64,000 bases of DNA from Magallana gigas (GCF_963853765.1 NC_088854.1:43710001-43774000); one strand, 5' to 3'. Counted from the first letter of the stretch, positions 16,801 to 42,615 are shown. Translations and numbers: made by a program. Notes: generated from the letters alone by a model not told the origin.

Positions 16801-19800
16801 AATGGTTTGGTGTCAATGTCGCCTTCGCAGAGCTAAGAAGGAGGCGGTAACTCTGGCGTTTTGTCACCGTATCGATCGGGCCCGGGGTTAATCCATCATA
16901 CCTTACAGTCAACAATATTACTAAGCAAGCAAGGAAATAAGGAAGAGACAGGAAATTAAAGCTCCCGAAGCCGAGTCAATCGCGGCAATTATCATATGAA
17001 ATATACTTTCACTGTTCATCATTTTCATCAGACCGGGAGATTATCGAAACGAATGGTCTGTTCTAGGAAATACAGTTTGGTAACAAAGAACGGCGCCGCT
17101 TCCGCTTCCCTTTAGCATGAATGTGTGAAAAATTGCAATCGAAAAAAAAAATCAACAGCAACGGAGAGAGTACATAACCTTAATATTATCGATTCGATCA
17201 AGTTTTATGTTAAGGTAGCCACAGTTCAGATAGGTCAAAATTTTCCTTAAATTCGAACTTAGATATTTCTCTTTGATGTAATATTGAGGAATATGTTTTC
17301 TGTTCACATAGTTTGAATGTAGCCTTTAGACTTTCTTTAGGAAGATCAGATATTTGGTATTAAAATGTAAATTAATTGAAAAAATTTTTTACATTTTGAA
17401 ATACAGCTTTGTTTATGTTACTCGTTATAACGAGAAAAGACCTATATAAAATGTCGCGTTTCATTGTACAACATGTACTCAATGAGTATCTTTATGTAAA
17501 ATGGATGAACATATATTAAAAAGTTTATTTAATTAGTGAAAGAAATTTCAGAATAAGGAGCAGAGCAAATTAATAAATTAAGTGACTAATGTATTAAGGT
17601 ACCTCACTACACCTACACTTATACTTTTTAAGACACTACGTCACAAGATGGCGATTTAAATTAATGTTTTATTAAACTGTTAATATCGTTCGATTGGGTT
17701 GTACATCGTCGTAACTCAGTGGTTAAAGTATTTGACTTCTGAAGCGCAGATCATGAGTTAGAAACCTGTGGAGCTTTTTTTCATGTTAACCCAATTGAAC
17801 TTTAAAAAATGTATTTTTTCATCCAAAATTGCACAATTTTTTGCCTTTTAGACTTAAATACTTCTTATCCATTATGATATCTATCATAATCAAGTAATTT
17901 TCTGCTGATTTTAGAAAAAATTTCACGGTTTAGTGAGTCACCTTAAATAGATATGAAAGATAATTTGTTTTCAGACTTCAAAATGTTACATGTAATATAC
18001 AAAAACAATTTTTTCAATATAGGTTATATATATAAAACACATTATGGGACAAATCTCGTATATCCTTTGAAGCTAAATAGTAATCCGTAACTAATAGAAT
18101 TGTGTTTTTATGACTAGGACTACCTGATATTTACTTCGGAGAGGGATTGTAATGTACGTTGAAAAGCAATTATTCATATAAGTTAACATGTCAAATCCGA
18201 TCATCTTAATGTAGAAGTTAATAAATAGGCCTAATGATCGCTGTTATTTAAAAATAATCAAAATTGGACTAACATTTCTGGAATAAAAAAAAAGACTGAA
18301 AGGGTGAACCAATCGACTTAGAGGTCTAGGTATGAACAAGGAACACTTATTAATTATATATTTTTTCACAATAATAAATCGAATTATGTATTTTTATTAT
18401 AACGAGATATTTTCTCGTAATTATGAGATAATCAACTCGTAATAACGAGATCTCTTCTCGTTATTACGAGATCTTTTCTCATCATTACGACATCTTTTCT
18501 CGGAATAACGAGATAATTAACTCGTAATAACGAGATTTTTTTCTCGTAATTACGAGATATTTTCTCGAAATAATGATATCTTGTCTCTATGAATATTTAT
18601 ATGAAAAAATTATTTCCTATGAAATTCACAACAAAACTCTAAAAAAAAAATTTTTTTTTACGAAAAAAAAGGGAATTCGTGTCCCCATCCGTTGACCTTT
18701 TTATGATACAATTTCATTTAGAAGATCTTCAAATATATTAAATTGTGTATTTATAATTTTATGAACTTGTAGACTGCACGTTTTCATGATAAATGGAATT
18801 TTTGTAAAATGGTGCCCATACAGTACAATTCTGCCATTTGATTTATCTTTTTAAAAAATCCTTGTTGTATAACAACATATTACAGTGTAGATAGAATATA
18901 TCGAATGCTAATATACATATTTTAACTTATAAAATTGCTTTCAATCAATGAAAAAAAAAATGTTCAAATAAATCTTTGTAATAGAGTACAATACATATAT
19001 ATATGTTCCGAAAATAAATATCTATATGTAAACAATAACAAGACCCGCGCTTTGTTTACAGAAAAAAAATTAAATTCTGTATCTTGCTTTAAACTCAATA
19101 ACCGACTTTAAAATTTTGACGAAGCATTGAAAACACCCATATTAACCATTCTAGACATTAAAAAAAACTTTAAAAGTTTGAGCTCTAGGTCCCTTTATAG
19201 TAGCAGCCATTGTTTTGACAACTCTGTGTTTTGTGTATGTGACAGATACTGGAAGACGTTCGTGGTGGACCCCTCCCAGAGCTACTACTACCGATGGCTG
19301 TTCGTCATCTCCTTCGCCGTTCTCTACAACATCGTCATCGTGATCGCACGGTCCGTGTTCGCCGAGCTACAGACGGAGTACCTGGCCCTGTGGATGGTCC
19401 TGGATTACTTCAGTGACTTCCTCTATATCATGGATATGCTTATATCCATGCGAACAGGTACAGCAGATACATCAGAAGCGTATTTGATTTTGTTTTGAAT
19501 ACATATCGGCATTTCATTGAATAAAGCAAAAGGATTAAAACCAGGGTCTTGCTACAACCGACGAAATTTAAATGAAACTCAAGACTTCTATTGACAAAAC
19601 TATCAATATCTACACCATTCTTATTGGGTTAATCAGTATTTAAATTTGCAAAAGTAAATCCATTTACATGCGTAAGTTTAAAATAGGCTGTGTCATTTTA
19701 TATTGTTTGGAAAGCAACGTCAAAAGGTCAAATCTCTGAATTTTAAGAAAAGTAAGAATCAAAACTTGCCTTCCTTACAATCGCCTGATCCTGAAAAATG

Positions 19801-21294
19801 ACATATCTTATTTAGCTTCAATGCACCTTAATTCATATTCGCATTAAACCGCTATATAAGAGGAAATGTTAATAAACATGAATTAAGTTTGAATTCAAAT
19901 TCATAATTTCAGGGTACCTGGAGGAAGGTCTCTTGGTTCGGGATGCCCAGAAGCTCCGTAAGAACTACACGTCATCCTCAATGTTTATAGCTGATGTGAT
20001 AAGTATCCTTCCTACCGATATCTTCTACCTTGTCACCGGCATCAACTACCCCGAGTTCAGGTTCAACCGCATTGTGCGGTTCAACCGGTTATTCGAGTTT
20101 TTCAATCGAACAGCCACAAGGACTAGCTTTACAAACATGGTCCGTATCTTTAACCTCTTGTTGTACATACTCATCATCATCCACTGGAATGCGTGTATAT
20201 ATTTCGCCATTAGTAATGCAATAGGATTTGGCAGTGACAAATGGGTGTACCCGAATGTGAGCATCCCAAAATACCAACCTTTGACCCGGAAGTATATTTA
20301 TAGTTTCTATTGGTCCACTTTGACCTTGACCACCATTGGCGAGACTCCGTTACCTGACAGGGACGAGGAGTATTTGTTTGTGGTCGTGGACTTTCTAATA
20401 GGTGTACTCATTTTCGCCACCATTGTTGGAAATGTTGGCAGCATGATCACGAACATGAACGCAACACGTGCAGAGTTCCAGCAGAAAATGGACGGCGTGA
20501 AGCAATACATGGAATTCAGGAAAGTGTCAAAGGAACTAGAGCAAAGAGTTATAAAATGGTTTGATTATCTATGGACAAATAAGCAATCCCTGAACGAAGA
20601 GGAAGTTTTAGGTACGCTTCCGGACAAATTAAAAGCAGAAATAGCAATACATGTGCATTTAGACACGTTGAAGCGCGTGGCTCTCTTTCAAGATTGTGAA
20701 CCAGGCATGTTGGTGGACCTTGTGCTTAAATTGAAACTACAAGTGTTTAGTCCAGGTGATTACATATGTAGGAAAGGTGACATAGGTAAAGAAATGTACA
20801 TTGTTAAGCGGGGACAGCTAGGTGTGGTTTCGGACGACGGCAAACAAATATTTGCGACGTTGCGTGAAGGAAGTGTCTTTGGTGAAATAAGCATATTGAA
20901 CATCGCAGGAAATAAAAATGGTAACCGGCGAACGGCCAACATTAGGAGTATAGGATACAGTGATTTGTTCTGTTTATCAAAAGATGACTTATGGGAGGTG
21001 CTCACGCAATATCCGGATGCAAAGAAAATACTCATGGACCGTGGTAAACTCATTCTGCGAAAAGACAACTTACTGGATGAGGACTTGATGAAAAAGTTGG
21101 AGGCTCAACAAGAGACGACGGAACAGAAACTGGAACGGATAGATTCAAACCTGGACACTTTACAGACGAGGTTCGCCAGACTCCTAGGTGATTACAACTC
21201 CACTCAACAGAAACTGAAGCAACGAATCACAAAGCTAGAAAAACTCTTGGCACGTGACCACGATGACGTGTCCAATATATCTGCGTTAGAATGA
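10886..21294 (+). CDS. CNGA: Cyclic nucleotide-gated cation channel alpha subunit (CNGA-type), >=651 aa; 5' end may extend upstream
   Basis: Exons 10886-11101 (acceptor at 10868/10869), 15441-15586, 19246-19457 and 19913-21294; GT-AG, phases 0/2/1, total 1956 nt. Motifs: [25 protein letters not shown] (S1), pore [37 protein letters not shown], and C-terminal leucine zipper [24 protein letters not shown]. Confidence 0.95.
11094..11195 (+). repeat. Short tandem duplication of a CNG exon donor region (GGTCAGTGACCAATTTGA x3)
   Basis: Copies start at 11101, 11155 and 11178; the first two include the upstream CTTTACA. Confidence 0.9.
15768..16224. mobile_element. TA-flanked MITE (Tc1/mariner-like), copy 1
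   Basis: TIR-like ends GTCTGTCCCAAGTTATTGC ... GCAAAAACTAGGGACAGAG, flanked by TA. Internally homologous to 32071-32546. Confidence 0.75.
17598..17942 (+). mobile_element. TTAA-flanked TIR element with internal tRNA-like A/B boxes
   Basis: TTAA|GGTACCTCACTACACC ... GGTTTAGTGAGTCACC|TTAA (13/16 TIR match). A-box-like TAACTCAGTGG at 17712-17722; degenerate B box GTTAGAAACC at 17757-17766. Confidence 0.7.
18397..18587. repeat. Palindromic ~21-bp-unit minisatellite (ACGAGAT...TCTCGTAAT)
   Basis: About 9 degenerate units such as TAACGAGATATTTTCTCGTAA, each self-complementary (CGAGA/TCTCG). Confidence 0.9.
19913..21294 (+). CDS. CNGA: Large terminal exon of the CNG channel (S3 to pore, C-linker, CNBD, leucine zipper)
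   Basis: Covers the 453-aa ORF 19933-21294. Acceptor ttcag at 19912. G|GG TAC CTG GAG GAA GGT completes [11 protein letters not shown]. Confidence 0.97.
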
Positions 21295-34278: not shown

Positions 34279-34307
34279 TCTCTCTCTCTCCCTATCTCTC
34301 TCTCTCC

Positions 34308-34358
<51 letters not shown>
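34279..34358. repeat. Imperfect (TC)n microsatellite
   Basis: TC run with two CCTA interruptions. Confidence 0.97.
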
Positions 34359-34361
<3 letters not shown>

Positions 34362-34831
34362 CAAAAATATCATGAAGTATGAATGGACCGTTCTGTTGAA
34401 TGATCAATTAATTATTAAAGACAGAATTAGTTTTAATTGTCTTTGGTTTTAACATGAAAGTGAAACTGCTGGTTTTTATAACAGCAACGCATCAGTTCGA
34501 AGGTTAAAATTGTCAAGCGATCATTGGTTTCTTTCATGCATGCATGTCTGCCTATCCTGCTACATATGACCAAGTCGGTCTTCCGCCGGTCTTATCGGCG
34601 GTACTCGATTTCGTGTGGGTGGGTAGACGTAGACCTCCAAGAGAAAAAAAAACTGCCTTTAAAATCTTAAGCAAACAAATAAAACGTGTGGACTATCATA
34701 AATCCGGCGCAGAATGAACAAATTGACATAATTTATCATAGACCGACCACACCCCCACCGCCGAAGGTCAGTCAATACACCGCTCACTCTCACTAGTACA
34801 ACAGTGTTGGAGCGAGAGGAGGGGAGGAAGG

Positions 34832-37800
34832 ATGGGTGACTCTGAAGGTAAGTGACCATGGGGGAGGTATGCTTCGATTAATATGTAAATATTCCCTCAA
34901 AGATCAAGTGGAGTCAGATCATATCGATTTTTTTAGAACCCAAATAATACTTCGTTGGCCTCAACGTAAAAGCCGAGACAGAACTTAGTGTTGATAAGTG
35001 ATGGCATGGGGAGAATGGATGAATGGATGGTTCAGACTTTCCCACGGGCGACCGATGACAGTTATTAACGAACAAATTATCACTGCTACTAAACGAGATG
35101 GACAATGAAAGCGTTAACTTCTAACTTGCAGTTAAATCCATTTTTATGTGTTTACAATGAAATGACTTGGTTTTATTCTCAATGTTTTTATTTCAGTTCA
35201 TAAATAATGAGGACACATTTTACTACATGTAACGTCCACCAGTATTACACCCCTTAGGTTATGAGGTGTCATTTGTTTCTTGATTAAATGTGCGGTATAG
35301 TAAGATACACTCATTGCCTACATTCGTTAGAATTCCCAACCCTGTACATATTTTCATTACACAGCCCTATGTATAACTTATTGTTTTCAAAGTGCACAGC
35401 CACTGATGTTTGGTCACTTTAAGAACTTCTTTACTTCACTTTACAATTATCTGTAATTTTTTTCCAACAAGTTGAAATGTTTGGGCATAAAAAATAATAC
35501 TATTTATTCACCTGTTCGTCTAAAATAACTAAACACACAGTTTGTTAGGCTTGTACATTATGTTAGCTGGTTCAATTGACAGATCGTTGGTGTTTCTTTA
35601 TTAGACATCCATGTATGCAAGGTCCATGCTAGCGGCGTACCTCTGAAGATTTTTCTACTCTTGCATGTCGCTGCATTTGCCATCTGTCGAGTGCAACAGC
35701 TACAATTACACTGTTAACATCTGCGAAACTCTAAGAGATCAAAGACACAACAAAATTAGGCAAATAAAAATAAAAATTAAATAAAAAACTAACTTTTAAT
35801 AGCTAATTTTCCTCTTCTTGTCGGTGTCCCCATAGAACGAACTGAAGTTGAAACCAAAATACAGATTTTCAACTTTCTAGAATCACTCACTTCTAATAAG
35901 AATGTTCAATTAAAAGTCATCATGCCATTTGATGCAATATTTTCAACTTTGATTCACTTTTGTGAATTCTCCTGTAGAGGTTGTGATGATGGCGGCGAAG
36001 CGTGACGGGCGTTCGGTGATGCGGCTGGAGAGGATGTTCCGAAGTGAAATAGACGACAAATTACTACTTCACGTGGCCGGGGGCCCCCACAAAGGAATAC
36101 TTATCGCCAAAGCAGTGGACAGTAAGTTTGACACACCAACGAAACAAATAGTACTGTAGATAGTTATACTAATTGACGAATAAGTGTACTGTCCATTGCA
36201 AGAAGATAACAGGGATTTTAAGAGATGTGAACGAGTTAGAATGACATGTAGGGATTATCGAAATTGACTCATGTCAAAAGTTTTGATTGATATATAACTT
36301 TTGACACCAATACATGTGATTATATGAAATCTCCTTTGTTGATTGTTGTGACTATATATGAAAGAAAATGGTGACCTATAATTTTGTTACCATGAACGTA
36401 AATAAAAAAAATATTTTTGACCCCAGTCTTAATTTGTAGTTTATGATTTGTGAATATGTTCTGTGTTTATGGTAAATATGACAGAATACATGTACAATTA
36501 TCGAAAGTTACAATCAATCAGTTACACGTAATTGCACCAAATTCAGCCTACATTTGAACTCAAATATACAAGGCAAATCTATTTTTATATTTGAAATTAC
36601 TTTCCCTATTAAGATAAAAACAAAATTTATCAATGCGTTTGTAGTTTATGCTGCAACATTTGATTTTTTTGGCAGTCTCGTATTAAAGTTCTGGAAAGTC
36701 GTTGAAATAGCTGAAAGTGATATTCTCGATCAAGACTATAATGATTGTTCTTTATATCAAATGCACTGATTATAGTATTAGTTTCATTTCATTTTACATC
36801 AACTGTTTTTGACAGTCTCGTATTTCCAGATCTGAAAGACGTGGAACCGGCCGAGGGACGCCTAGAATTTCTTGCCTACCTTGTCAACGAAGAACAACAC
36901 AATCAATCTGTGCAGGTAAAATATCTCCGCAAACAAGTTCCCCAAACTACTTCAAACACACTGACTCAATTTTTTATCGTGTCACGCCTACCCAAAATGC
37001 CTACCCGCATTCAGTGCGCTTTTTCATTTTTTCTTTCGATATCTGTTGATATGCTTTCAATTTATTTTACCTGCATTTACCTTCTGAGTGACACGTGAAT
37101 GGTTCCGTTGACAGGATTACTGGACCCTGCGGTTTTGGTTTCGGGGACAGGCTGAGGGGGTGGTGAAAAAGAAGACGTTCACGGATTACTTCCAGGAACT
37201 CATGAACCCATCGAGTTTTCCAAAGAGTATGCAAATCTAATATGTGATCCCCCGACATTTGGAGTCAGAAAGAAAAACAAAGCCCTTTGAATTAAAGTAC
37301 ATGTATTGCCTCCTTGATATATAAAAATTTTAATATAGCTTTCACGTGCTGTGTGTGCATTGGTTTGAAAAAATAATATACATGCATATGAGTACCACAC
37401 TCGGTATAGTCATAGGAAAGGAACATGTAAAATGCAAAATCGTTACACTTATTGTTACAAACTCATCATACAGATATTACAAATAACGGTTGAAGTGGTT
37501 GATATAACCCAACCCCAACAACTCCCCCTTAAGTCCGCTCATCTTTGCAATAAGCAAGTTTTACTCTAGTGTTTAACGCAATAAAATACAATCATAATGT
37601 GTGTGCTATATTTCTGATAATTCACATGAATGCAATATGAAGTACAAACGTAGTTCGGTAATAAAGTGCTTTCTATATAAACGTTATGTTTAATTTGCTT
37701 TCAGATTACATTGGATTCATCAAGAAAGCCCTGGTGCTCCTCAAGGTGTACCACGTCATCAAGAGGGTCGAGCTCGAGGTTCAAGAGACAGAAGACCCGT

Positions 37801-40800
37801 CACCCGAGGAGTCAATCCCTCCAATCAGTGGGTCCATTATCGTACATGTATATCGTNNNNNNNNNNNNNNNNNNNNNNNNNNNNNNNNNNNNNNNNNNNN
37901 NNNNNNNNNNNNNNNNNNNNNNNNNNNNNNNNNNNNNNNNNNNNNNNNNNNNNNNNNNNNNNNNNNNNNNNNNNNNNNNNNNNNNNNNNNNNNNNNNNNN
38001 NNNNNNNNNNNNNNNNNNNNNNNNNNNNNNNNNNNNNNNNNNNNNNNNNNNNNNNNNNNNNNNNNNNNNNNNNNNNNNNNNNNNNNNNNNNNNNNNNNNN
38101 NNNNNNNNNNNNNNNNNNNNNNNNNNNNNNNNNNNNNNNNNNNNNNNNNNNNNNNNNNNNNNNNNNNNNNNNNNNNNNNNNNNNNNNNNNNNNNNNNNNN
38201 NNNNNNNNTTTCCCAATCTATATTAGTCTATGCGAATACATTATATACTGCACACCACTACTGGTACTGTACCAGTTATCGGCTAAGACCAGTTATCGGC
38301 TAGACCGAGAGCTTGGGTTTATAGCACGAGACTATCCAAGATTATTTAATGCAGTCCTTTGTTTTGAAAAAAGAAAAGTAAATTTGCTTGTAAACTTTCT
38401 TAAGACTGTTTTAAACATGAGCTTAAACGATCATTTTTTACCGCTGATTTACATTTTTGCACTTTCAGCAATGGGAGAAGTGACATAATAAGTTAAAAAC
38501 AGATTATAACCTCCTTGTGATACATTATCATATCCCTTATTTGATTAGATATATAATATCACTACAAATAACATGTAGAAACAAAAGGAATTCACTAAAT
38601 TCTGAGAAATTCATAGCGCAGTTGAACGCCTGGTTGCACAATATTATGCATAAAATAGTCTACGATTTTGACTGAGTATTACCAAATGATAACAAACGAA
38701 TAATTTTATGAGTTTTGTTTTATATCATAACCCCTACGACCTTTAGTCTGATCCAAAAAGGGACATAATTCAAAGTACATTTTGCAGACTATCAATATGT
38801 ACATGGATTTTACAATGTTATTATCGCGAAGCTGATAACTGGTACAGCAATTCGTTAAATCTCGGCAAATTCAGGGCTTACTAAAAAGCACACAAACAGA
38901 ATAAATAATGATTTAACCTAATAGCTGCATAAATAAGGAGTTCACCATTTAAAGTATGTCAAGTTTTATTAAAAAATATCAAGAAATAGGGAAATATGAA
39001 AAGAAAATGTTAAATTTTAGCCGATAACTGGCACAGTGGTAGTATGTAGCACCGGAAGGCAACAAAGTACATATAACTTGGTCTTTTCAATCCGAACTTC
39101 AACATTCCCACAATAAGCAACTTCTTAGGCTTAACACATTTGATAGAAATACTAGTATAAATTTACATTTTCTAGTGTTTTAGTCTGTGGTAACAACACG
39201 AATCAAATTTGTAATTATATTCCAATAAATTTCACCAATGACGCAAATGATCGACGTATTGTGGATGCAAGCGGGGTTTGCATAATTACACGGAATGCCA
39301 AAAAAAAACAAAACAAAAAAACCCCGTGAAAATGTCAATAAATTAACATTCAATCGTACAGCTTCTGATATTCATATAAATATAAGTAATAAGAAAAGAT
39401 TCTTTGAATATCATCACAGTCGGAGGGTGATTAAATCTAATTAACATTATAAAGGCCCTTGTAGCTTTTTTTATTCGATCACGCTCCGACCATAATGATC
39501 CTTTAATGATAATCAAAAAATGATTCCTTAGTACTGAAATATGACATGTACTCCTTCATTAGTAGTATATAATCATAAACATTCTGGTCGAGAAATCAGT
39601 CATCCAATCTGAGCTCAAACATCAAACGGTTTAATCTTTACCAAAGACGTACATTAACATATGCGATATCAATCAATCAATCAATGATGATAAATCCACG
39701 TTTCACCTTTCAAATGTATTCATTTTATAACAATATGACAAATCAAATAATGCTTTGTTTTGAATGTATATATAGTCCTGATCTATTGTGGCATTGGAAA
39801 TTAAAGAGATATATGATGATTTCAGAAAGTTTCACATCAGTGTTCACCCCAGCGTCTTACACATATCAACTTGTGCCAGAAGTACAAATTAACAACAAAA
39901 CCTTCATCACATTCATGGTTAAGGCGGCTGCTGACGCTCACGTCGCACTAAGCGCAGTTTATGGTGACGTAGACCGCAAAACCTATGAAATCGTTATCGG
40001 AACTGACGGAAACACAAAATCAATCATCCGCTACGGAGCCGGCGGACCGATCATGGTCGAATCAATGACCATGAATGTACTATCCGAGGAGGAATTCCGA
40101 TATTTTTGGGTCAACTGGGCGAACAATAAGATCGAAGTGGGACGTGGTGCTAATTACGGAGTGGGTGCTTTCCTCCAATGGACGATTCCACCCAGTAAGC
40201 AGTTCAACATAAACTGTCTGGCAGTCTCAACTGGAACCCCGTCACGTGGGCAATGGGAGTTTGCAGAACTTTTGGGTTTGTATTAATTCATTTTAACTGA
40301 ATAAGTTGCATAATCTAATATAATGGAATTTTTGGTTTTCATGACCTTTTTTTAATAGATGCAGAAAAGGATTTTGGAAAGGAAGCAAAAAAGAAACGAA
40401 TCAAACACTCTTTATTATGGATTGCGAAGAAACAAAAAATGTTGCAATGTCTAGAAGACGCATATCCCAATATGGTGAAAACTGCAGAAATGTTTAAGTA
40501 AGTATTGAATTGAATGGAATTTGGTCTACTGGTTTCATTTTTAAAAATCTTTTAACATTTACTTTTTATTTTAGATACTGTAAAATCAAGCAGTCAGATA
40601 CGATGGCAGCTCTGGTGTTTTTATCAGATATGCAGAAAAAGAATTTGATTAAGGAGGTGGAGGGTGGCTATTGGATGAGACTGCAAAAGAGCCAAGAATC
40701 GGAAATTATCAAACATGGTTTGACATTTATTTTTTTTATATTAAATAGTCAAATAACCCTTAAGAATATCCAGAATGTGCAATTGCATAGTTTAGTGTTT

Positions 40801-42041
40801 GTCAGTATGCATTTTGATGAATATTTTAGAGGTAAAAATCGTCAAGCACATGCCAGAACTAAAGGCTTCTGAACAACCAACCATCGCCATTGTGACGTCA
40901 CTTTTCTGCGAGAAAGTAGCTGTGGATGCCATGATTGAAGAAAAAACAACATATGTGAAATATAAAACAGAAGGTTGCTATAAAATTAATCTAGACATAT
41001 TCCATTTCATCATACTCTTTATATGCGCCCTTATCTGTTCACCTTTTGTATGAGCAATTATAATATGTCAAATTTAACCTAAGATGACATCTTTATTTGT
41101 TGATATAGGCGAGTCTCAAGTATATACATTGGGGAGAATAGGAAAGTTCAAAGTTGTTTCAACGAAAGTATCTCGTAAATCTTCGTCAGAGCAGGAGGCA
41201 AGGATATGTGCAGAAAACACTATTACAAGACTTCTAGGTATGAGTTATTTTTGAATTCTTTAAATCTTTTAACTTGAAAAAAATATTGATTAAGAGTTGT
41301 CGTGCGATTTTTTTTTAAAATAAAGGTTCATTCAGCAAAATCCACCACGTGTTAATCGTGGGTGTCGGAAGCGGGGTACCCCATTACTCCGACGGCAATC
41401 AACACGTGCGTCTGGGGGATGTGGTCGTGTCTGTGCCTTCCAGAAAGAACGGTGCTATTTACATGTACTGTGATAAGATAGAGAAGATGACCGACGCAAA
41501 CGGTTACAATTATTCTACGCGGGAATGGGACTGCAGTGACAACTCGCTACAGGATGTCGCCGTCAGTCTAAAACAAATCATGGAGAGGGACACCAACCCA
41601 CAGAGGCCGTGGGACCGCTACATGAACGACGCCAAAGATATCCTCCAAACCGAGGAATCTAACTTCCACCGACCTCCAATGAAGACGGATCGACTGTTCT
41701 ACACAGACGACAACGGAACTGACTTAGAACTGGAGCATCCGGCCGCTGGTAAAGGTTACCGGGTAGGACAGAGCAACTGCCGCCTGGGGGTGATCGCTAG
41801 CGGTAAACTTGTCTCCAGGAGCCCCCGTCTACGACAGTCATTCGCGGAAATAAACGGCATCCGAGCATACGACAGTGACGTCACTGCGGTTTTGGAATCG
41901 TTGGAAGGGAACCGAAATAACAGCTTTATCATCATTCGAGGGATCTCCGATTATTCCAGCGGCTCCAGAAAGGAATGGCAACCGTACGCATCCCTGGCTG
42001 CCGCCGCTTACATGAAGTCGCTCATTTATGCTTTGAAATAA
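34832..42041 (+). CDS. Uncharacterised ~733-aa protein: novel N-terminus + Methyltransf_FA-like domain + probable winged helix + PNP_UDP_1 (Pfs/nucleoside phosphorylase) domain
   Basis: Exons 34832-34847, 35978-36121, 36830-36915, 37115-37226, 37705-37827, 39826-40275, 40359-40497, 40575-40717, 40830-40973, 41109-41237, 41326-42041. Total 2202 nt, GT-AG, in phase. Least certain: the 16-nt first exon (MGDSE; alternative start ATG 35986) and the exon 5 donor next to the N gap. PNP motifs: TIAIVTSLFCEKVAV, VGVGSGVP, VRLGDVVVS, GVIASG, IRGISDY. Confidence 0.85.
37857..38208. other. Assembly gap (352 N) in intron 5 of the PNP-domain gene
   Basis: N run. Confidence 1.
38267..39036. mobile_element. 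770-bp non-autonomous TIR element (TA-type)
   Basis: TA|CTGTACCAGTTATCGGCTAA ... TTAGCCGATAACTGGCACAG|TG (19/20 TIR match). Extra subterminal copies at about 38288 and 38830. Confidence 0.75.
39826..40275 (+). CDS. Exon encoding a complete farnesoic acid O-methyltransferase-like (Methyltransf_FA) beta-rich domain
   Basis: Sequence FMVKAAADAHVALS...YEIVIGTDGNTKSIIR...NVLSEEEFRYFWVNW.NNKIEVGRG...FLQW...LAVSTG....GQWEF matches the family pattern. 450 nt, phase 1 at both ends. Confidence 0.85.
41326..42041 (+). CDS. Terminal exon carrying most of the PNP/MTA-SAH nucleosidase-like domain
   Basis: Covers the 230-aa ORF 41349-42041, with GVGSGVP, RLGDVVVS, GVIASG, IRGISDY and WQPYASLAAAAYMK. Acceptor aag at 41325. 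Confidence 0.88.
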
Positions 42042-42615
42042 TGAACTAGCTTTCAGGATGGGGATTTAATTTTCCCTACGCTTATTAAGTTTTTTTATAT
42101 GAATATTTTTGGAGGGGGGGGGGGTCCATGTTATGTGCATAATATGACAGTGCTGTAAGATTAAAATGCATTTATTTTGCTTTAGTTCAGGTTTGTTACT
42201 AACTTTTTTGTCATCTTTGTATTTATATGAGAGTAACTCAAGGTAAAAACATAACATTTATAAACTTAAGACAGAAGTGGATCAGATAGGCTGAAGTAGT
42301 ACACAGACAAAATCAACAACTGTTGACGAGTCGGCTGTTTATAATGCTATAGCAATCACGTGCAATTTGATCTTTTCTCTGAAAGATTTATTAATAATTT
42401 GCGTGTTTTAACCTTGTAATACATAAATTAAAAAATGCTCCATGTAGATTTTAAAATTCAAGTGCACTCCAAACTTACAACTGTTATCTTTAAATTTGCA
42501 TTCTTTTAAAAACATACATGTACTTTAATGGTCGCATAGAGAGACTATTGTAAAAGTAATGGCAAATAAGTATTATGCATAGGCACCTGACGTTATATTT
42601 TTCTCAGAATAAATG

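Follow-up and report, generated by a model that had tools for sequence, protein, structure and literature searches.

An oyster gene combining a Methyltransf_FA domain with a winged helix and an effector-type PNP domain

We analysed a stretch of 64,000 nucleotides from Magallana gigas (GCF_963853765.1, NC_088854.1:43710001-43774000; hereafter the window) and found that it contains, on the plus strand at 34832-42041, a real and intact gene that is spliced and expressed as one mRNA. The encoded protein carries a conserved N-terminal domain (N-domain), a Methyltransf_FA (FA) domain, a winged helix of the HTH_69 type and a C-terminal long-form PNP domain. We are highly confident, for the structural and evolutionary parts taken jointly, that it is an orthologue belonging to a lophotrochozoan subfamily of an animal N-domain/HTH_69/long-form PNP family. 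The explanation that we favour as a whole, comprising the gene, its family, the insertion of the FA domain and a predicted adenine-nucleotide nucleosidase activity, has in our estimate somewhat better than an even chance of being right.

Structure and expression of the gene

The gene was rebuilt from GT/AG sites by reading frame, which gave 11 exons, a coding sequence (CDS) of 2202 nucleotides and a product of 733 amino acids. An earlier note on this DNA, made from the sequence alone, had proposed an 11-exon open reading frame (ORF) of about 733 amino acids, and this proposal was borne out by the rebuilt model, by transcripts and by RNA reads. The 733-residue product (P0269) of a 2482-nucleotide Logan transcript contig was 99.6% identical to the model over residues 1-733 without a gap. 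Three transcript contigs from three separate runs (L001-L003) mapped exon by exon onto the window at the predicted borders, and each contained an uninterrupted ORF of 2202 nucleotides. In addition, raw stranded poly(A) reads from three runs, together with one RNA contig, revealed that all joints from 36915 to 41326 were of the GT..AG type; the joints from exon 3 through exon 11 were each crossed by raw reads, and the RNA lay on the plus strand. The FA and PNP exons were found on one transcript in the three contigs, not on the separate transcripts that the note had considered. The sequence motifs named in the note (GVGSGVP, VRLGDVVVS, GVIASG, RGISDY, LQCLEDAYPN, LSDMQKKNLIKEV and GYW) were all present in the rebuilt model, and the order of domains was as it had described.

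Exon 1 (34589-34847) consists of the 5' untranslated region (UTR), which begins at least as far upstream as 34589, and the start codon at 34832 with 16 coding nucleotides (MGDSE; CDS part 34832-34847). The contigs L001, L002 and L003 reach in the 5' direction to 34651, 34606 and 34589, respectively, and the 3' border of the exon at 34847 stands before GTAAGT. At the other end of the gene, the 3' UTR (42042-42120) extends at least to 42120 in the alignment of L001, and RNA depth continues to about 42150. At the 36830 acceptor of exon 3 the reads stop, their loose ends consisting of exon-2 sequence; the joint from 36915 to 37115 was also seen. An alternative exon-3 acceptor at 36816 was ruled out by the frame and the transcripts.

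The poly(A) RNA signal was low and steady in unrelated runs, and the transcript cluster comprised 297 members from many runs. Comparison of the window with the three transcripts revealed 6-8 synonymous and 2-3 non-synonymous codon differences; because most of these differences are synonymous, they are consistent with purifying constraint. A polymorphism was seen at 37225, in the last two bases of exon 4, where the reads and the RNA contig have AA and the window has GA; it is synonymous (Lys) and lies directly at the donor.

Domains of the protein

The N-domain occupies about residues 1-150. It is encoded mainly by exon 2 (35978-36121, residues 6-53; model and transcript contigs) and by exons 3 (36830-36915, residues 54-82), 4 (37115-37226, residues 83-119) and 5 (37705-37827, residues 120-160), which are supported by the model, the transcript contigs and the RNA reads; exon 5 carries the end of the domain and a linker and ends in phase 1. 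The earlier note had left this part as an unknown N-terminal region. It proved to be a conserved domain that is common to the family members without an FA domain (non-FA members), as indicated by BLASTP, by its presence in 137 retrieved proteins and by structure: a model built on 61 sequences (predicted local distance difference test, pLDDT, 80.5) matched the N-terminus of an arthropod HTH_69+PNP cluster with a template modelling (TM) score of 0.83. The N-domain had no sequence match in the PDB, and Foldseek returned nothing at an E-value of 0.001 or below. Its best VIA-align matches reached a Z of 5.1, under the tool's noise level of 7-8, and were to ribosomal eS1 and to T-fold enzymes (urate oxidase, dihydroneopterin aldolase and PTPS), and T-fold rows also appeared in a structure-atlas search at TM 0.45-0.47. 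A T-fold-like arrangement of about residues 58-152 is therefore a weak lead from modelling.

The FA domain lies wholly within exon 6 (39826-40275, residues 161-310), an exon with symmetric phases 1-1. Methyltransf_FA (PF12248) was detected at residues 171-306 with an E-value of 7e-30 on P0269 and 2.5e-28 on the exon alone, scoring 104 bits against a cut-off of 24.2 and covering model positions 4-136 of 140. No sequence relative of this domain was found among the solved structures in the PDB, and the literature search likewise yielded no structure of an FA domain. Exons 7 (40359-40497) and 8 (40575-40717), whose joints were confirmed by reads, encode residues 311-404, that is, a linker and the HTH_69 winged helix (PF22979, residues 336-393). 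On the oyster protein the winged-helix match is borderline: the cut-off is 27 bits, and the score is 28.4 for residues 305-410 but 24.2 for the complete sequence. The match is clear in the orthologues and the non-FA family, with up to 57.6 bits among those scanned.

Exons 9 (40830-40973), 10 (41109-41237) and 11 (41326-42041, stop included) encode residues 405-733, and the model, Foldseek, the family profile and the tree described below all assign this region to a long-form PNP domain of the MTA/SAH (methylthioadenosine/S-adenosylhomocysteine) nucleosidase (MTAN) fold. An AlphaFold model of these 329 residues, built on 71 relatives, had a pLDDT of 93.2 and a predicted TM score of 0.93. It matched MTAN structures with a Foldseek E-value of 6e-12 and a TM score of about 0.7 by target, and the top 49 matches were all nucleosidases of the MTAN type (MTAN or futalosine hydrolase; E-values 6e-12 to 6e-10). 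A profile of the family found MTANs in the PDB weakly (E-value 3.6e-4), and a phmmer search of the PDB with the last exon gave chance matches only. Among the relatives, Pfam called PNP in the paralogue family and in two orthologues, P0123 and P0124.

The Pfam scan of P0269 detected neither NACHT, NB-ARC nor any other nucleoside triphosphatase (NTPase) family at an E-value of 1 or below, and the oyster protein contains no Death, TIR or NOD-like receptor (NLR) module. The description "NLR-type PNP" in the earlier note thus holds for the likeness of the PNP domain and not for the protein, which has no NTPase and hence is not an NLR. The protein is of the cytosolic type, with an N-terminus that by eye is not signal-like.

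Affinity of the PNP domain

A "defensive" clade of PNP proteins was defined by Rousset et al. 2023 (bioRxiv 10.1101/2023.01.24.525353), who reported ATP/dATP N-glycosidase activity for Cap17, DtcC, a domain of a fungal NLR and a sponge Death-domain protein. The earlier note had placed the oyster PNP domain with effector-type proteins rather than with housekeeping MTAN and PNP enzymes, and profile scores, the tree and the matches outside the family all supported this placement.

A single-sequence search with the last exon alone retrieved 3152 representatives at an E-value of 1e-3 or below, and the best matches outside the family were PNP+NB-ARC+TPR, PNP+NACHT and EAD8+PNP proteins, at 75-100 bits. 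In prokaryotic genomes, a scan turned up 14 loci at 23-29% identity, 13 of them aligned over nearly the whole domain. These bacterial relatives matched the PADLOC model PDLC00759 (CBASS "Effector, PN-superfamily") with E-values of 1e-13 to 1e-22 and were fused to VMAP or to patatin and Kelch, or formed the last part of proteins some 1280 amino acids long. The individual architectures were a long-form PNP with VMAP-M0/VMAP-C in Actinocrinis (L006), PG_binding with patatin, Kelch and PNP in an acidobacteriote (L016), and PNP at the C-terminus of otherwise unannotated proteins of about 1280 amino acids in Clostridia (L011, L013 and L017). They look like conflict-system architectures, perhaps not all of them catalogued.

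When the profile of the animal family was applied, bacterial PNPs scored 105-138 bits and NLR-type PNPs 105-175 bits, compared with 10.4 bits for E. coli Mtn, 2.2 for DeoD and 0 for Udp; Amn was not found. In a tree that left out the Cap17 and DtcC sequences, the winged-helix/PNP family adjoined tandem-PNP/NB-ARC proteins and actinobacterial PNPs, with Mtn and DeoD far outside. Tandem double-PNP proteins (P0172, P0198, P0210, P0224 and P0232, one of them with NB-ARC) formed the sister group of the animal family. In addition, about 100 residues that exceed MTAN (oyster residues 532-640) were occupied in 81-86% of the bacterial and NLR-type relatives. Clustering with housekeeping enzymes, which the earlier note had named as evidence against its own proposal, was not observed (105-175 against about 10 bits or less), and by sequence comparison the domain is of the effector/NLR-associated type, not the housekeeping type.

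Conservation and origin of the FA form

The chiton orthologue P0121 retrieved FA+HTH_69 proteins of about 730 amino acids, and those scanned (P0123, P0124 and P0145) were also weakly recognised as PNP. The orthologues come from chitons, from gastropods (Haliotis, Aplysia, Biomphalaria, Lottia, Patella, Elysia and others), from bivalves (Mytilus, Pinctada, Potamilus, Mercenaria, Mya, scallops and Dreissena), from cephalopods (Octopus and Argonauta) and from two nemerteans (Tubulanus and Lineus). Among the matches listed, the FA form was limited to molluscs and nemerteans, with none in annelids or brachiopods; next in that search stood several hundred HTH_69+PNP proteins of about 580 amino acids without FA, which among the matches listed came from arthropods, molluscs and a bryozoan. 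Orthology of the FA form was near one-to-one across phyla, with similar lengths, and extra copies were present in some lineages (three on one contig in Mya arenaria and two in Biomphalaria). Molluscs keep a non-FA paralogue beside the FA form. The combination of FA and PNP, which the earlier note did not know as described, is no oddity but marks a conserved orthologue family of molluscs and nemerteans, whose members public protein sets already list under the names "uncharacterized" or "CPMD8-like".

Its winged-helix+PNP core is very probably of a kind noted before. The defensive clade includes Z-alpha-like/winged-helix+PNP members from arthropods and nematodes (CG12065, H14E04.2 and one from Apis; Rousset et al. 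2023, bioRxiv 10.1101/2023.01.24.525353), and the animal N-domain/winged-helix/PNP family is very probably the one to which Drosophila CG12065 and C. elegans H14E04.2 belong. The searchable literature contained no description of the FA-bearing form. The winged-helix+PNP core is thus known but uncharacterised, and the FA-bearing form is new without being a new category.

Comparison with a non-FA paralogue located the difference between the two forms. Oyster residues 3-146 aligned with residues 4-150 of the scallop protein P0321 (30% identity, BLASTP E-value 2e-18) and residues 311-729 with 164-570 (40% identity, E-value 1e-99); the unaligned middle of the oyster protein was exon 6 and a short linker. 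Because exon 6 is exactly the segment that is missing from the non-FA paralogues, the FA domain is interpreted as an insertion. In the PNP tree, 14 FA proteins formed one clade (SH-aLRT 98) within the winged-helix/PNP family (100, stem 1.16). The non-FA gene of Argopecten has, at the corresponding linker, an exon with a phase-1 end, after which comes an intron of 9 kb. The simplest reading is that the FA subfamily arose once, when a phase 1-1 exon entered the phase-1 linker intron of a duplicated family member, presumably before the split of molluscs and nemerteans; the order of events is deduced from distribution and tree. The exon structure of the linker is not identical between the paralogues, and a small linker exon of Argopecten was not located. 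About seven linker residues (RNAEDIF) were missing from the flanking exons by tblastn (L022, 13050-22159), pointing to a micro-exon somewhere within the intron of 9 kb.

Active site

The oyster motif R700-G-I-S-D704 aligned with R193-A-I-S-D197 of E. coli Mtn. D704 was conserved in 40 of 41 FA members, in all 102 non-FA members and in all 13 bacterial relatives. The catalytic aspartates of the bacterial effectors are Cap17 D472 and DtcC D353, and D704 would be the equivalent of the former. E432, a conserved glutamate after strand 1, was present in 41/41 FA members and is the probable equivalent of MTAN E12; D527 was likewise present in 41/41, and R524 was nearly invariant. The oyster domain thus retains all five catalytic positions considered (E432, R524, D527, R700 and D704). 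The MTAN residues E172-M173-E174 are represented by E-M-E in the bacterial relatives, by D-x-E/D in the animal family and by D678-S-D680 in the oyster. On this pattern catalysis is plausible, but possibly with a different specificity, and changes may have affected some of the FA members.

Proposed function and alternative explanations

By analogy with Cap17, DtcC and the sponge protein DDAN, the PNP domain would act as an N-glycosidase on adenine nucleotides; given the enzyme type of the tested members of the clade, this is the most likely activity by inference. Its activity would be restrained, or switched on upon a signal, by the modules that precede it (N-domain, FA beta domain and winged helix). 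As the signal, the winged helix might receive a nucleic acid; alternatively, the FA domain or the N-domain might receive a small molecule or a glycan. Substrate, gating and any immune role are our inferences from these analogies. An immune role is possible, and a regulatory or housekeeping role fits the conserved, mostly single-copy pattern about as well.

Several observations weigh against the proposed function. First, the literature contained no enzymatic, binding or challenge-expression data on any family member, nor anything on the function of CG12065 or on immune regulation of the oyster gene. Second, near one-to-one orthology together with steady low expression resembles the picture of a conserved role in the cell more than that of a fast-evolving immune effector. 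Third, Pfam PNP_UDP_1 gave no match at an E-value of 1 or below on the oyster protein, on single PNP exons or on residues 400-733 of P0269. The protein's own match to PADLOC was weak (E-value 2.7e-5), and the placement of the PNP domain in a Cap17-like clade is well supported but indirect, coming from a tree without Cap17 and DtcC. Fourth, the idea of a Z-alpha winged helix was not supported at the level of sequence profiles: when all PDB sequences were searched with a profile built from 60 winged helices of the family, Z-alpha chains were absent at an E-value of 10 or below. The same search gave no other clear match, and a feature search of the ESM Atlas gave no usable one. By eye, the oyster winged helix also seems to lack the Asn/Tyr pair of ADAR1 Z-alpha. 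Finally, the oyster protein has D680 at the position of MTAN E174 and S707 where the family, the bacterial relatives and Mtn nearly all have Asp, and in the FA clade the equivalent of R700 is Leu in 9/41 members and that of D678 (MTAN E172) is H, Q or S in 10/41.

The alternative that survives best is a conserved housekeeping or regulatory nucleotide or nucleoside enzyme that has no role dedicated to immunity. It could, for instance, be a regulated nucleosidase for AMP/ATP or other purines that works in purine homeostasis or in signalling, and the FA domain and winged helix would then serve allosteric control or localisation. We consider this possible, if on balance rather unlikely. The largely single orthologues of similar length throughout Mollusca and Nemertea and, for the non-FA family, across arthropods, the purifying pattern of polymorphism, the low steady poly(A) RNA in unrelated runs with its 297-member cluster and a protein free of NLR, Death and TIR modules would all be expected of such an enzyme. 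However, the oyster PNP domain scores more than 100 bits nearer to the PNPs of conflict systems and of the NLR type than to the housekeeping enzymes Mtn, DeoD, Udp and Amn, the few proteins of that clade tested so far all act as toxic nucleosidases of ATP, and Mya arenaria and Biomphalaria carry the extra copies mentioned above.

A more specific version of the proposed function, in which the FA domain, perhaps with the weakly T-fold-like N-domain, is a sensor of a small molecule, lipid or glycan and gates a Cap17-type ATP nucleosidase together with the winged helix, seems to us unlikely. If true, molluscs and nemerteans would possess a lineage-specific, cell-autonomous defence switch that depletes ATP when triggered by a metabolite or a pathogen, and a Methyltransf_FA domain would have its first assigned role as a sensor module.

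We are a shade more doubtful that the PNP domain of the FA subfamily has lost or changed its catalysis and serves as a ligand-binding or scaffolding pseudo-enzyme. The substitutions at the equivalents of R193 and E172 in the FA clade, to which G or N at the equivalent of E174 in 3/41 members may be added, and the replacement of a near-universal Asp by S707 in the oyster are what this explanation would predict. On the other hand, E432, D527 and D704 are kept in 41/41, 41/41 and 40/41 members, the oyster protein retains R700 and acidic residues at 678 and 680, and the domain model (pLDDT 93) has an intact fold.

Intron 5 and the assembly gap

Intron 5 (37828-39825), whose joint was seen in reads and contigs, holds an assembly gap and a repeat-like stretch. 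The gap is a run of N at 37857-38208, 30 nucleotides downstream of the exon-5 donor. In all three mRNA contigs, 37827 was joined directly to 39826 with no extra letters (663|664 in L001), and the same GT..AG joint was present in the raw stranded poly(A) reads (three in run X22 and two in X23) and in one contig from X5. The frame is kept across the joint, exon 5 ending and exon 6 starting in phase 1, and orthologues from other species show no insertion here when they are aligned. Because the joint is direct and in frame in the mRNA, the gap conceals no coding sequence; a hidden exon is excluded by the transcript contigs and the raw reads.

The gap separates the N-terminal exons from the FA exon and its length is merely estimated, which would leave room for an annotation or assembly chimera of an FA-domain gene and a PNP gene, but this explanation is refuted by P0269, by the uninterrupted 2202-nucleotide ORF in three contigs from separate runs, by raw reads across every joint of exons 3-11 including the one that spans the gap, and by the same length and order in orthologues from more than 30 species, so that we give it practically no chance.

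Just after the gap, the stretch 38156-39065 was covered by RNA reads of both strands with many loose ends (contig depth 213 in X5); it looks like a dispersed repeat or a transposon fragment expressed from elsewhere. A tandem duplication of 17 nucleotides lies at 38271-38306.

Genomic surroundings

The upstream neighbour on the same strand is a cyclic-nucleotide-gated (CNG) channel gene, seen as large exons at 19127-21294 (+), with Ion_trans (E-value 1.4e-26), cNMP_binding (1.8e-18) and CNG C-terminal leucine zipper (4.8e-24) domains. A (TC)40 microsatellite at 34279-34358 lies about 230 nucleotides upstream of the furthest transcript 5' end at 34589, in the presumed promoter region.

Significance

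In bacteria, the nucleosidases of Cap17 and Detocs make the destruction of ATP an antiviral strategy; animal relatives have been noticed and none has been studied. The oyster gene is one of a well-delimited, conserved family in animals that carries this type of enzyme. It also offers a datable natural experiment, in which one exon would have added a putative sensor in the mollusc/nemertean lineage and the unmodified paralogue was kept. The FA/non-FA pair therefore provides a direct route to what the N-terminal modules sense and to whether ATP is depleted in animal cells, and it may give a testable role to the long-unexplained Methyltransf_FA domain. For oyster health, in relation to OsHV-1 (ostreid herpesvirus 1) as well as Vibrio, the gene is a candidate for challenge-expression work, its involvement in immunity being putative.

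Comparison with known systems

The closest known proteins are of the kind of CG12065 (Q8MRM6), H14E04.2 (H2L0A5) and A. mellifera A0A7M7MVF0, which share the order of N-domain, HTH_69 and C-terminal long-form PNP; in the PNP tree the oyster protein falls within this family, from which it differs by an extra Methyltransf_FA region of 150 residues between the N-domain and the winged helix. With Cap17 of CBASS and DtcC of Detocs, it shares the PNP/MTAN fold, the long form of about 300 residues and the catalytic Asp. The bacterial sensors, however, are TPALS/SLOG or receiver domains, whereas the oyster protein has its three N-terminal modules (N-domain, FA domain and winged helix); the oyster gene has no operon partners, and its activity is a prediction. 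The Pfs-like PNP domains of fungal and coral NLR-type proteins and that of sponge DDAN group with the animal family, away from the housekeeping enzymes, but the oyster protein lacks the NACHT/NB-ARC NTPase, the repeats and the Death domain of those proteins.

MtnN and the purine and uridine phosphorylases have the same fold, and their R-x-I-S-D motif aligns; identity is about 14-17%, the MTAN/PNP enzymes have about 230-250 residues where the oyster domain has about 100 extra, and the ribose-binding E-M-E is replaced by D-S-D in the oyster. Finally, the crustacean FAMeT and CPAMD8-type proteins share the PF12248 domain, which is the source of the automatic "CPMD8-like" names. Unlike these proteins, the oyster protein carries a single FA copy in a predicted intracellular nucleosidase, with no thioester/A2M region, no DM9 and no second FA domain.

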